DNA of 63,978 nucleotides, the filler included, from Olpidium bornovanus S191 (lineage: Eukaryota; Fungi; Olpidiomycota), in the NCBI GenBank assembly GCA_017911155.1. It is 28 parts of 28 records of this genome, joined end to end, with 100 filler letters (N's around TTAATTAATTAA, not from the genome) between each part and the next. Parts side by side here need not be neighbours in the genome. Positions count along the whole stretch, not along the records: positions 60,132 to 62,649 come from JAEFCI010008077.1; 27 more parts are not named here. One strand, 5' to 3'. Below the pieces are notes generated by a model. The model did not search any database and was not told the origin of the DNA. It saw only the letters and a program-made list of their open reading frames with translations. A program made the translations under genes and the position numbers. This document shows positions 60,032 through 62,749 of this stretch, in pieces. How positions within the stretch are numbered: the stretch's first letter is position 1; each line of letters opens with the position of its first letter.

Positions 60032-60180
60032 NNNNNNNNNNNNNNNNNNNNNNNNNNNNNNNNNNNNNNNNNNNNTTAATTAATTAANNNNNNNNNNNNN
60101 NNNNNNNNNNNNNNNNNNNNNNNNNNNNNNNCCCCCCCCACCTCCCCCCCCCCCCCCCCAGACGCCCCGGCGAGGAGGGC

Positions 60181-60217
<37 letters not shown>

Positions 60218-60357
60218 CCCCCCCCCCCCCCCCCCCCCCCCCGCCTGCGCCGACTTCCCTCTTCCCCGCAACATTAGATAAAACAACAAAAAAAGAATCT
60301 GCATCTTGCTCACCTTCACCCCCTCTCCCCGTCCCCCTCCCAACCCCGTCCCCAGCA

Positions 60358-62604
60358 ATGTCCTACGAAGAACAGCTCCGCTGGCACCTCGAGGAATTGC
60401 CGCCGGAGCCCGACCAGCCGGCGTGCCTGGATGGGTCGCTGCGGGTGCGGGAGTGGGCGCAGCACTACCCGCAGGTGGACGTGGAGCCCGGGTTCTTCCG
60501 CCCGCTACCACCGCCGCCGCCGCCGCCGTCGTCCTCCTCCTCATCCCCCTCCGCCTCGCCGGCGGCGGAGGCGGCGCCGCCGCCGTCCGCGACCAGCCAC
60601 CAGCTGGTGGCCGCCGTGCTGAAGGAGCACGCGAAGAGCGCGGCGTTCCGCGAGGCGAAAACCGCGGAGCTCGCCGTCAGGCTGGACGAGTGCGACGCGA
60701 GGATGGTCTGCGCCGTGGCGGCGGCCGACGGCGGCGGCGGCGGCGAGGCGAAGGGGGCAAAGCCGCCCACGCTGCAGTCCGTCCTCGAGGACGTTGAGAT
60801 GGTACGGCGGGGGGGAAGCGGGGGAGCGGGAGGGGGAGCAGGATGTGGGCGGTGTGTGTTCTCCTGTTTCTCGTTCTCGCTTCCTTTCCCTTCCCCGGCC
60901 GCCGCAAAAAAAATCCCACTTCCCCCTCCCCCCAATCTCCCCCCTCTTCTTCCGCCGCACCCACGGGCGATCGACGGCTCCCGTCGTCCCCCTCCTTAAC
61001 ATTCCCTTCCCCCGCGTCGGTCTTTTTTTTTTTTTTTTTTTTTTTTTTGGGGGGGGGTGGGTGGGAGAAGGGGATCTTAATCATTTTCTCTCAATTTCTA
61101 TTCCCCCTTTCCCATTGATCATCATGACATCGTTGTCTTCTCGCATTTCCGCCGCGCGCCTCCTGCCCGCCTTCCCGCACACGCACCCGCCCCCCCGCCC
61201 CAGATAAATCTCGAGCTGAGCCTCTTGGAAAAGTTCACCGCGACCTGCCGGGAGTCGTACGAGCTGTTCCTTCGGCGCGTCGACCCCCAGGCGCTGGCGC
61301 CGTACATGGAGAGCGTGGAGCAGGTGGCGGAGAGGATCCGGCCGGACAAACCGCGGATCGCGCAGCTCGTCGGCAGGCTGTCGAGGAGGTACGACGAGCT
61401 GAGGAGCGGGCGGGTCGCCGGCGGCGGGGACGGCAAGGGACCCGCGGGTAACAACGTCAGCACGTTCGTCCGGAAGAGCATCAAGTACTGGGTGGGTGGT
61501 CGACCGCGCGAATGGGGGGGGGGGAAGGGGAAGGTCAAACGGGGTGACAGTTCTTTTTTTTATTGTTTCTCCCACGACCCCGACTCAAAATTCTTGTACT
61601 TCTTCTTTTGTCCACACACACCGCAGGTCCACCCCGACAACCTGACGGAGATCAAGTGCCACATCCTTCGGCACCTGCCAATCTACGTTTTCCCGAACGC
61701 GGACGGGACGCCGCACAACCCTGCTGTGTCGTCGGTGTACTACGACAACGACGACCTCCAGCTGTACACCGGCCGGCTGCTGAAGCAGGACGAGGCAATC
61801 GCGCTGCGGATCCGGTGGTACGGGGCGCCGGACACGCCGACGGTGTTCGTCGAGAACAAGGTGCACTACGAGGATTGGACGGGCGAGCCGAGCACCAAGT
61901 CGAGGTTCGGGCTGGAGGAGAGCTTGGCGAACGAGTTCATGGCGGGCACGTTCACCCTGGACGCGAGGATCCGAGAGCTCGCCGCGCAGGGGAAGCTGCC
62001 GCAGAAGGAGATCGAGGCGATGGACAGGCTCGCGAAGGACGTCCAGAGGGTCGTCAGGGAAAAGCAGCTCAGGCCGATGGTCCGCACGTTCTACCACCGG
62101 ACCGCCTTCCAGATCCCCGGGTCGGCCAAAGTCAGGCTCAGCATCGACGAGGACCTGACGTTCATCCGGGAAGACGCCAACGTGGTGGGGAGGAAGGGAA
62201 AAGACGGAGCAGGTACGAGGAGGGGGAAAAAAACAAAACGAGATGGGGGCGGCGCGAGATGGGGAGGAGGGGGCGAAAAGAAGTAGAAGAGGAGTTTGTG
62301 CTGACGGGCGAAGCAAAAAGGAACTCTTTCTTCCTCACTGGTGATCGTTGTTTCTGTTTTTATCCCGGGGCAAAAACCGTTCGTGCTTACCTTCGCGAGG
62401 GCCGTTGGGGTGGCGGGGGCCGCGCTGTCGTCAGAACCTGATGCGAACTGGCGCCGCCGCGACGTCGGCATCGATTGGCCTTTCCAGCATCTCCCTGAGA
62501 ACGAGGTCCACCACTTCCCCTACGCCATCATGGAGGTGAAGCTGGAGGTGGAAACGGGGAAAGAGCCTCCGCTCTGGATCCGGGAATTGATGCAGAGTCA
62601 GCTT
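60358..62604 (+). CDS. VTC polyphosphate polymerase complex subunit (Vtc4/Vtc2-3 family) with a divergent SPX-like N-terminus, 3'-truncated
   Basis: FVRKSIKYW|VHPDN...ILRHLP, SSVYYDN, LRIRWYG, FVENKVHYEDWTGE.STKSRF, RTFYHRTAFQIPG..KVRLSID, and FPYAIMEVKL. Confidence 0.96.
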
Positions 62605-62749
62605 GTGAGTTGAAAACCACCGATTCTCTCTACTTCCCTCGGCCCACAANNNNNNNNNNNNNNNNNNNNNNNNNNNNNNNNNNNNNNNNNNNNTTAATTA
62701 ATTAANNNNNNNNNNNNNNNNNNNNNNNNNNNNNNNNNNNNNNNNNNNN

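Follow-up and report, generated by a model that had tools for sequence, protein, structure and literature searches.

SPX domains are universal eukaryotic receptors that link phosphate status, via inositol pyrophosphates (PP-InsPs), to phosphate transport and storage, and Vtc4, a subunit of the VTC complex that synthesizes polyphosphate (polyP), is a textbook case. We analyzed a VTC gene of Olpidium bornovanus S191, a root-parasitic fungus, that is located in a stretch of 63,978 nucleotides joined from 28 parts of its genome assembly (GCA_017911155.1), called the window below. This gene, referred to as copy A, lies in the piece spanning positions 60132-62649 of the window (record JAEFCI010008077.1). 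As judged from sequence profiles and predicted folds, it encodes a Vtc4-type subunit whose N-terminal domain derives from SPX and has kept the SPX shell but lost the basic surface that binds the ligand.

In yeast Vtc4, Guan et al. (PMC9911596) assign Y22, K26, and K133 to a phosphate-binding cluster and K129, K132, and K136 to a lysine surface cluster. Engineered mutants described as "pseudo-active" have been reported at Y22, N123, and K129 (Pipercevic et al. 2023, PMC10167327). In isolated yeast vacuoles, the vtc3 K126A / vtc4 K129A combination was fully active without ligand, and the N120A/N123A and Y19F,Y22F mutants were partly active and insensitive to 5-IP7 (PMC10167327). This was explained by an additional role of the same residues in stabilizing an inhibitory SPX-SPX contact (PMC10167327). 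Vtc2 and Vtc3 also combine an SPX domain with a TTM-like domain, and their SPX domains keep the Tyr/Lys clusters (PMC9911596) without being the main sensor.

Copy A resembles yeast Vtc4 (PDB 5IIQ, 7YTJ, 8I6V) in its overall layout, which comprises a six-helix N-terminal domain, a linker ending in KYW, and a TTM tunnel domain. The Pfam VTC model (PF09359) matched exon 3 and, with an E-value of 3.3e-8, exon 4, and among PDB sequences the TTM part was closest to yeast Vtc4 (1.8e-62), with Vtc2 and Vtc3 reaching only 5e-31 to 4e-27. A tree of TTM domains agreed with this placement, Vtc2 and Vtc3, whose TTM domain is inactive, falling far from the Olpidium clade. Residue alignment to the yeast Vtc4 chains showed that K200 (in KYW), R264 and R266 (in LRIRWYG), and E426 (in MEVKL) are all kept, and, of the 47 TTM columns with a conservation of 95% or more across 37 Vtc4-like domains, 45 are identical in copy A and the other two are conservative. 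Copy A is thus, by its sequence, a Vtc4-type subunit with intact catalytic residues. The C-terminal DUF202 membrane domain was found in a second Olpidium copy (copy B) and in a related metagenomic protein (L004), both described below; a counterpart in copy A would lie beyond the edge of the piece.

The original prediction had described the N-terminal region as that of a VTC subunit with an SPX-shaped N-terminus, and our data bear this out. In an alignment with 26 canonical Vtc4 N-termini, MSYEEQL of copy A falls over MKFGxxL, EWAQHY over EWxxYY, and LLEKF stands just before helix α4, and the region named in that prediction (60358-61491) begins at the ATG of exon 1 and ends at the last base of exon 2. 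The motifs that it quoted were found in these two exons, TCRESYELFLRRVDP falling over the canonical LNYTGFxKILKKHDK. The Pfam SPX model (PF03105), however, gave no match for exon 1, exon 2, or the database protein of this gene (KAG5458685.1, or P0001), up to E-values of 1-10, so that the proposed check with an SPX profile was silent with the Pfam model but significant with a profile that we built from 37 canonical Vtc4 N-termini. With this custom profile, residues 79-124 of exon 1 aligned to model positions 43-88, corresponding to helix α3 (9.9-10.3 bits), and residues 43-96 of exon 2 aligned over α5-α6 and the linker (19.6 bits). None of 2000 composition-preserving shuffles scored as high as exon 1 or exon 2, and the two matches follow the canonical SPX order. 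When alignments of the Olpidium exons were compared with the canonical alignment by hhalign, E-values of 5.5e-5 for α2-α3, including the EW anchor, and of 1e-9 for α6 and the linker were obtained. In each of the three Olpidium copies, EKF, before α4, and LSxxYD, in α6, stand exactly 47 residues apart, which is also the modal canonical spacing (26 of 42 proteins), and α4 can thus be aligned without gaps.

The metagenomic protein L004 provided a further link. Its first 198 residues span the canonical profile from end to end (model positions 1-198, 41.8 bits, E 6.5e-15 for one target), and its α4-α6 region matched the full-length exon 2 at 3e-9 and the third Olpidium copy (copy C) at 3e-15. In a language-model search with the L004 N-terminus, 74 of the 100 nearest neighbours were SPX clusters (scores 0.92-0.94); the same kind of search with residues 1-226 of KAG5458685.1 gave one SPX/VTC cluster at 0.85, which is a lead only. 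A word search with the same 226 residues returned nothing, but poly-Pro/Ser words dominated its 5138 candidates and even the paralogs were missed, and this is therefore not evidence of absence.

Structure prediction was consistent with these alignments. An AF2 model of residues 1-226 of KAG5458685.1, an input that is missing 17 true exon 2 residues and whose alignment contained canonical SPX rows, showed six helices (pLDDT 76.6, pTM 0.71). Compared with VIA-align, its top 17 PDB entries were all SPX domains (Vtc4, rice SPX1, and XPR1; Z 11.4-13.2, 158-175 residues aligned), the superposition on the yeast Vtc4 SPX reaching Z 13, with unrelated helical bundles at Z ≤10.4. A second model, of the L004 N-terminus and made from an alignment of its own clade only, also had six helices (pLDDT 67, pTM 0.64); among 48,161 PDB chains, it ranked rice SPX1, ScVtc4, and the CtVtc4 SPX in positions 1-3 (Z 11.2-10.7), with CorA next at Z 10.0, a small margin. 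Foldseek alone also ranked SPX chains first, at non-significant E-values of 0.5-1. The domain moreover occupies the canonical SPX position of Vtc4. Taken together, profiles, spacing, and predicted folds indicate that the N-terminal ~244 residues of copy A derive from SPX, and the models point to a retained six-helix SPX architecture. A phmmer match of exon 2 residues 15-62 (61246-61389) to the RGS domain of SNX25 (E 0.06) was set aside as a chance resemblance, since it misfits the architecture order of VTC proteins and all the other evidence favours SPX.

The positions that form the sensor in yeast are invariant or nearly so in the alignment of 26 canonical Vtc4 sequences. In copy A, the equivalents of Y22, K26, K129, and K136 are non-basic, N123 is a Cys, and K132 and K133 are Arg. 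The 27-residue α4 segment has a net charge of -1, -2, and -2 in copies A, B, and C, respectively, compared with a mean of +4.5 (range +2 to +8) in 83 canonical proteins. Among the SPX columns that are at least 85% conserved, 15 of 32 are kept in copy A, compared with the 45 of 47 of the TTM domain, and the losses concentrate in α1, α2, and α4. The surviving columns are hydrophobic or structural and include W15, Y19, F60, K64, E67, L110, S162, and the linker. Copy A further differs from yeast Vtc4 in carrying an insertion of 18 residues between α1 and α2, which holds a PACLD..LRV motif conserved between copies A and B. These comparisons indicate that the basic ligand surface of the SPX-like domain is lost, with two positions showing a conservative Lys to Arg change. 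The predicted loss of the sensor residues is thus upheld, with the nuance that K132 and K133 are Arg in copy A, where the basic cluster was not wholly erased. The features of the gene and the residues found at the sensor positions are listed in Table 1.

Table 1. Features of the copy A gene, in window positions, and residues at the sensor positions of the Olpidium copies and of L004.
Feature	Positions	Strand	Evidence or remark
5' untranslated leader	60339..60357	+	First X1 contig begins at 60339, 19 nucleotides before the ATG, and is colinear to 60800
Exon 1, 148 codons, SPX-like helices α1-α3 and start of α4	60358..60801	+	Splice donor in contigs
Olpidium-specific insertion of 18 residues between α1 and α2	60394..60447	+	Absent in canonical proteins and in L004
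Former phosphate-binding face of α2	60454..60489	+	W33 and Y37 retained (W15 and Y19)
Substitutions in α2: V40 for Y22, E43 for L25, P44 for K26	60475-60477 (V40); 60487-60489 (P44)	+	
Pro/Ser/Ala-rich low-complexity loop between α2 and α3	60499..60591	+	Far shorter in copy B
Long helix α3	60592..60729	+	Exon 1 stretch seen by the canonical SPX profile and by hhalign
Intron 1, 402 nucleotides, GT..AG	60802..61203	+	Spliced out in X1 and X9 contigs
Exon 2, 96 codons, remaining α4, α5, α6, linker ending in KYW	61204..61491	+	Spliced contigs
Former α4 lysine cluster, FTATCRESYELFLRRVDP	61234..61287	+	Ungapped 47-residue register
Substitutions in α4: C15 for N123	61246-61248	+	Exon 2 numbering
Substitutions in α4: L21 for K129	61264-61266	+	Exon 2 numbering
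Substitutions in α4: R24 and R25 for K132 and K133	61273-61278	+	Exon 2 numbering
Substitutions in α4: P28 for K136	61285-61287	+	Exon 2 numbering
K of KYW, equivalent of catalytic K200	61483-61485	+	Alignment of exon 2 to yeast Vtc4
Intron 2, 135 nucleotides, GT..AG, without in-frame stop	61492..61626	+	X1 and X9 contigs
Exon 3, TTM/VTC catalytic domain, R264 and R266 equivalents kept	61627..62212	+	Pfam VTC, 1.2e-47
Intron 3, 222 nucleotides, GT..AG	62213..62434	+	X1 and X9 contigs
Exon 4, TTM domain continues, E426 equivalent kept	62435..62604	+	Donor at 62605 to an exon past the edge of the piece
Copy A at Y22/K26/N123/K129/K132/K133/K136			V/P/C/L/R/R/P
Copy B (L001 and L003) at Y22/K26/N123/K129/K132/K133/K136			V/D/C/L/S/K/P
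Copy C (L002) at N123/K129/K132/K133/K136			C/L/N/Q/S; α2 outside the contig
L004 at Y22/K26/N123/K129/K132/K133/K136			Q/E/H/A/A/A/Q

The cysteines encoded at 60424-60426 (in PACLD), 60691-60693 (in DEC/EDC), and 61246-61248 (in FTATCR, replacing N123) are the same in all Olpidium copies that cover them. A possible new metal or redox site formed by these conserved cysteines (C23, C112, and the Cys of FTATCR) was considered and dropped as an explanation, L004 having a His at the α4 position.

Sensor loss was not restricted to copy A. Three VTC copies were found in the Olpidium assembly. Two contigs, L001 (1-1216) and L003 (1-1597), overlap by 121 nucleotides with 100% identity and together yield a near-complete copy B including DUF202; the NCBI model on L001 (P0160) leaves both introns unspliced and carries no annotation other than hypothetical protein. 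By scanning metagenomes with the exon 2 alignment, we also retrieved L004 (Ga0307902_101332, open reading frame 429-2381), a complete protein of 650 amino acids with VTC and DUF202 domains. It shares with the Olpidium copies the LLEKFTA[ST]xR motif and the loss of the seven sensor positions, but its gene is intronless and AT-rich, and it has neither the α1-α2 insertion nor the Pro/Ser loop, and its N-terminus still matches the canonical profile over the full length. The three Olpidium copies grouped in one clade (SH-aLRT 99) when 124 TTM domains were placed in a tree, and L004 was the sister of this clade (98). The loss is common to copies A, B, and C, as far as their contigs reach the sensor positions, and to L004, and the basic cluster is erased further in copies B and C than in copy A. 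Since it is shared, parsimony places the loss before the split between Olpidium and L004 and before all the duplications.

Synonymous divergence (dS) between the copies was 0.7-1.7 and thus saturated, and the copies are therefore old paralogs, not alleles. Nonsynonymous divergence (dN) of the SPX-like exons was 0.41-0.47 (copy A versus B or C), roughly double the value of the TTM exon (0.20) and far below dS, and NG86 gave approximate dN/dS ratios of 0.13-0.39 in the SPX-like exons and of 0.11-0.29 in the TTM exon. The SPX-like domain is relaxed, not neutral, and is under purifying selection. Two newly conserved motifs were found between the copies, PACLD..LRVxEWAQxYP and NLELxLLEKFTATCR.

The original prediction had called the gene a paralog, implying that a canonical copy exists elsewhere. 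This found no support, as the loss was found in all three Olpidium VTC genes and in L004 and no canonical Olpidium VTC protein was found in word-indexed searches, which are insensitive, of this fragmentary assembly. These searches, which need shared words of five residues, likewise gave no further Olpidium VTC-domain protein at 107-894 amino acids; however, Olpidium genes are easily missed because the assembly contigs are only 1-2.5 kb long, and a canonical copy may have escaped detection.

The exon structure was established by comparison with transcript contigs from two public runs, X1 and X9, and database searches were run exon by exon. The piece is GC-rich eukaryotic DNA that carries, on the + strand, the 5' portion of a single gene, of which four exons were read. 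Upstream of the ATG, the reading frame stays open across a poly-C tract without any ATG, and the similarity between copies A and B begins exactly at the ATG of copy A. Helices were predicted in exon 1 at residues 3-12, 26-34, and 77-124. Spliced contigs of both runs skip all three introns exactly, and beyond 62606 the contigs continue in frame into a canonical ..EEAPKFSKF segment. The copy A gene is transcribed and spliced. Since these contigs confirm the exon borders, no alternative exon brings back the lysines, and the refuting condition set in the original prediction, RNA data with other exons that restore the lysine cluster, did not come about. In runs X21 and X24, coverage was essentially zero in the 6% of reads sampled, which is uninformative on the expression level.

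An exhaustive HMMER search identified KAG5458685.1, 99% identical to copy A and labelled [quoted passage not shown]; its contig of 2518 nucleotides is the piece 60132-62649. Compared with the transcript contigs, its model (60358-62613) is mis-spliced: it is missing the first 10 and the last 7 residues of exon 2 and runs on into part of intron 3. This mis-splicing is in part why the copy A protein looks odd in databases.

Several local features were observed in the reads and in the DNA. One X1 contig (62183-62461) retains intron 3 and shows two G>T differences (62313 and 62418); it could be explained by a retained intron, by pre-mRNA, or by carried-over DNA of another strain. In both runs, a G>C difference at 61433 replaces a Gly by Ala in the Gly-rich exon 2 linker and is probably a strain polymorphism. 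A depth spike of 66-94x at 60532-60562 comes from an unrelated abundant transcript that shares a Ser/Pro-coding repeat and is not copy A expression; its foreign origin is shown by loose ends on both sides and by an A>C difference at 60543. Finally, a near-pure poly-C tract lies upstream of the gene (60132-60245) and intron 1 contains a T(~27)G(~8) run (61023-61066). The transcript contigs break at these tracts, which may be real low-complexity DNA or assembly noise.

We consider it probable that Olpidium Vtc4 is a PP-InsP-insensitive, largely constitutive polyP synthase in which the SPX shell is retained but the sensor surface is erased. This reading is favoured because yeast mutations at the same positions give ligand-independent activity, and Y22, N123, and K129 are substituted in every Olpidium copy covering those positions. 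In contrast to the engineered yeast mutants, the Olpidium changes are natural and lineage-fixed and are accompanied by the loss of K26 and K136, and a non-exhaustive search gave no Vtc2/3 partner. The SPX-descended domain of copy A keeps its six-helix shell in the models, and its inositol-(pyro)phosphate surface is erased, helix α4 having shifted from strongly basic to slightly acidic. By analogy with yeast, the changes at Y22, N123, and K129 would break the inhibitory SPX-SPX contact and lead to ligand-independent activity, and the amount of polyP made would then depend on expression and on the supply of ATP and inorganic phosphate. An always-on synthase would fit an obligate intracellular parasite. 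Because the SPX-like domain is still under purifying selection, it probably has another function than canonical PP-InsP sensing, either structural or regulatory. Among the options put forward in the original prediction, "constitutive" seems best backed, by the yeast mutagenesis at the same positions (PMC10167327). The suggestion of a new way to regulate polyphosphate storage proved to be speculation, as the data show a lost sensor surface on a constrained domain and not a new regulatory input. More tentatively, the complex may be PP-InsP-independent with a repurposed SPX shell, in which new surfaces (PACLD..LRVxEWAQxYP and LLEKFTATCR) would bind another regulator or lock the TTM domain in an active state, the same outcome having possibly been reached independently in microsporidia.

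Several points weigh against a constitutive synthase with an SPX shell. The Arg-Arg pair of copy A at positions 132/133 and the conserved Arg of the FTATCR motif may still provide an anion site that is weaker or shifted. Triple mutation of either the phosphate-binding or the lysine cluster of Vtc4 lowers InsP6-stimulated synthesis by the purified yeast complex (PMC9911596), so that sensor loss could reduce activity. Activation in yeast also needs a Vtc2/3 partner, which was not found in a non-exhaustive search of a fragmentary assembly. In addition, the dN/dS values are rough because dS is saturated (>1), and the Z scores of the models (10-13) are just modestly above those of unrelated helical bundles, the first model having had canonical rows in its alignment.

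The first two of these points lead to different accounts of the same changes. PP-InsP control could have been kept but relocated, either to an accessory SPX subunit of the Vtc2/3 or Vtc5 type acting in trans or to the remaining arginines serving as a weaker or shifted site. This appears unlikely, even though yeast VTC has SPX domains on several subunits (PMC9911596, PMC10167327), copy A has Arg-Arg at 132/133 (R24 and R25 of exon 2), and genes are easily missed in contigs of this length: the word-indexed searches mentioned above gave no other Olpidium VTC-domain protein, Guan et al. (PMC9911596) attribute sensing in the assembled complex to the SPX domain of Vtc4 and not to that of Vtc3, the Arg pair is replaced elsewhere (by S-K in copy B, N-Q in copy C, and A-A in L004), and α4 has a negative net charge in all copies. 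The blinded SPX domain could instead have turned the protein into a poorly active subunit or a brake that makes little polyP, with the copies in a reduced or different role, as the triple mutants of the purified yeast complex would allow (PMC9911596). We find this rather improbable given that the catalytic domain is strongly constrained (45/47 columns, dN/dS 0.11-0.29, rough as stated above), all three copies have been kept, spliced transcripts of the gene exist, and mutants at the same positions are hyperactive in the vacuole assay (PMC10167327).

The premise of SPX descent could also be wrong, the N-terminus being an unrelated helical extension, for instance RGS-like, that resembles SPX by chance. 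The silence of the Pfam SPX model even at E-values up to 10, the weak SNX25 match of exon 2, and the non-significant Foldseek E-values are in line with such an origin, but it is very improbable in view of the significant profile matches in the correct order, the exact α4 spacing, the position of L004 as a bridge between the Olpidium and canonical groups with SPX clusters as its language-model neighbours, the first ranks of SPX structures in both fold searches, and the location of the domain at the SPX place of every canonical Vtc4. As for an artefact, through mis-assembly or an incorrect exon model, or a dead copy decaying as a pseudogene, the short contig of a MAG and the mis-spliced NCBI model call for caution; nevertheless, this is scarcely credible, as the exons, with their frame open, are seen in spliced contigs of two runs, the same features recur in two paralogs and in L004, and dN is far below dS.

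Among the VTC proteins with a long N-terminus, about 78 of 92 have intact sensors. Degenerate sensors were found in a microsporidian clade (Enterocytozoon, Enterospora, and Vavraia), in extra paralogs of Phycomyces, Rhizopus, and Rhizophlyctis, and in Fabomonas, and none of the degenerate VTC proteins scanned, including that of Nematocida, had a Pfam SPX match. The microsporidian proteins (Enterocytozoon bieneusi XP_001827737, Vavraia culicis VCUG_01010, Enterospora canceri ORD93360, and Nematocida NEFER03_2150) resemble those of Olpidium in carrying VTC and DUF202 domains and, at the N-terminus, ~120-200 residues without a Pfam SPX match and with degenerate sensor positions, and microsporidia are likewise obligate intracellular fungi. 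However, their N-termini have none of the Olpidium motifs, and their clade was separate (SH-aLRT 99), a sister relation to the Olpidium clade not being resolved by the tree. In Rhizophlyctis rosea (P0020 and P0104), one protein is a canonical Vtc4 and the other is a sister paralog with degenerate sensor positions, whose model of 1106 amino acids additionally carries TFIIB and BRF1 domains and is probably a fusion of two gene models. Our literature search retrieved no description of a natural sensor-less Vtc4, nor of sensor loss in microsporidian VTC.

An SPX fold that is under selection without its ligand surface would amount to a natural separation-of-function allele of Vtc4, and the Olpidium protein would let the scaffold role of SPX be asked apart from sensing. 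The lineage also offers a test of whether the yeast "pseudo-active" mutations correspond to a physiologically viable state. In Pfam-based annotation, the cryptic SPX domain of such proteins stays hidden, since they are listed as "VTC domain only". The microsporidia, with their parallel loss, suggest that obligate intracellular life and the abandonment of PP-InsP control of polyP are linked, and if the shell has indeed been repurposed, phosphate sensing through inositol pyrophosphates would have been dismantled repeatedly in obligate intracellular fungi.

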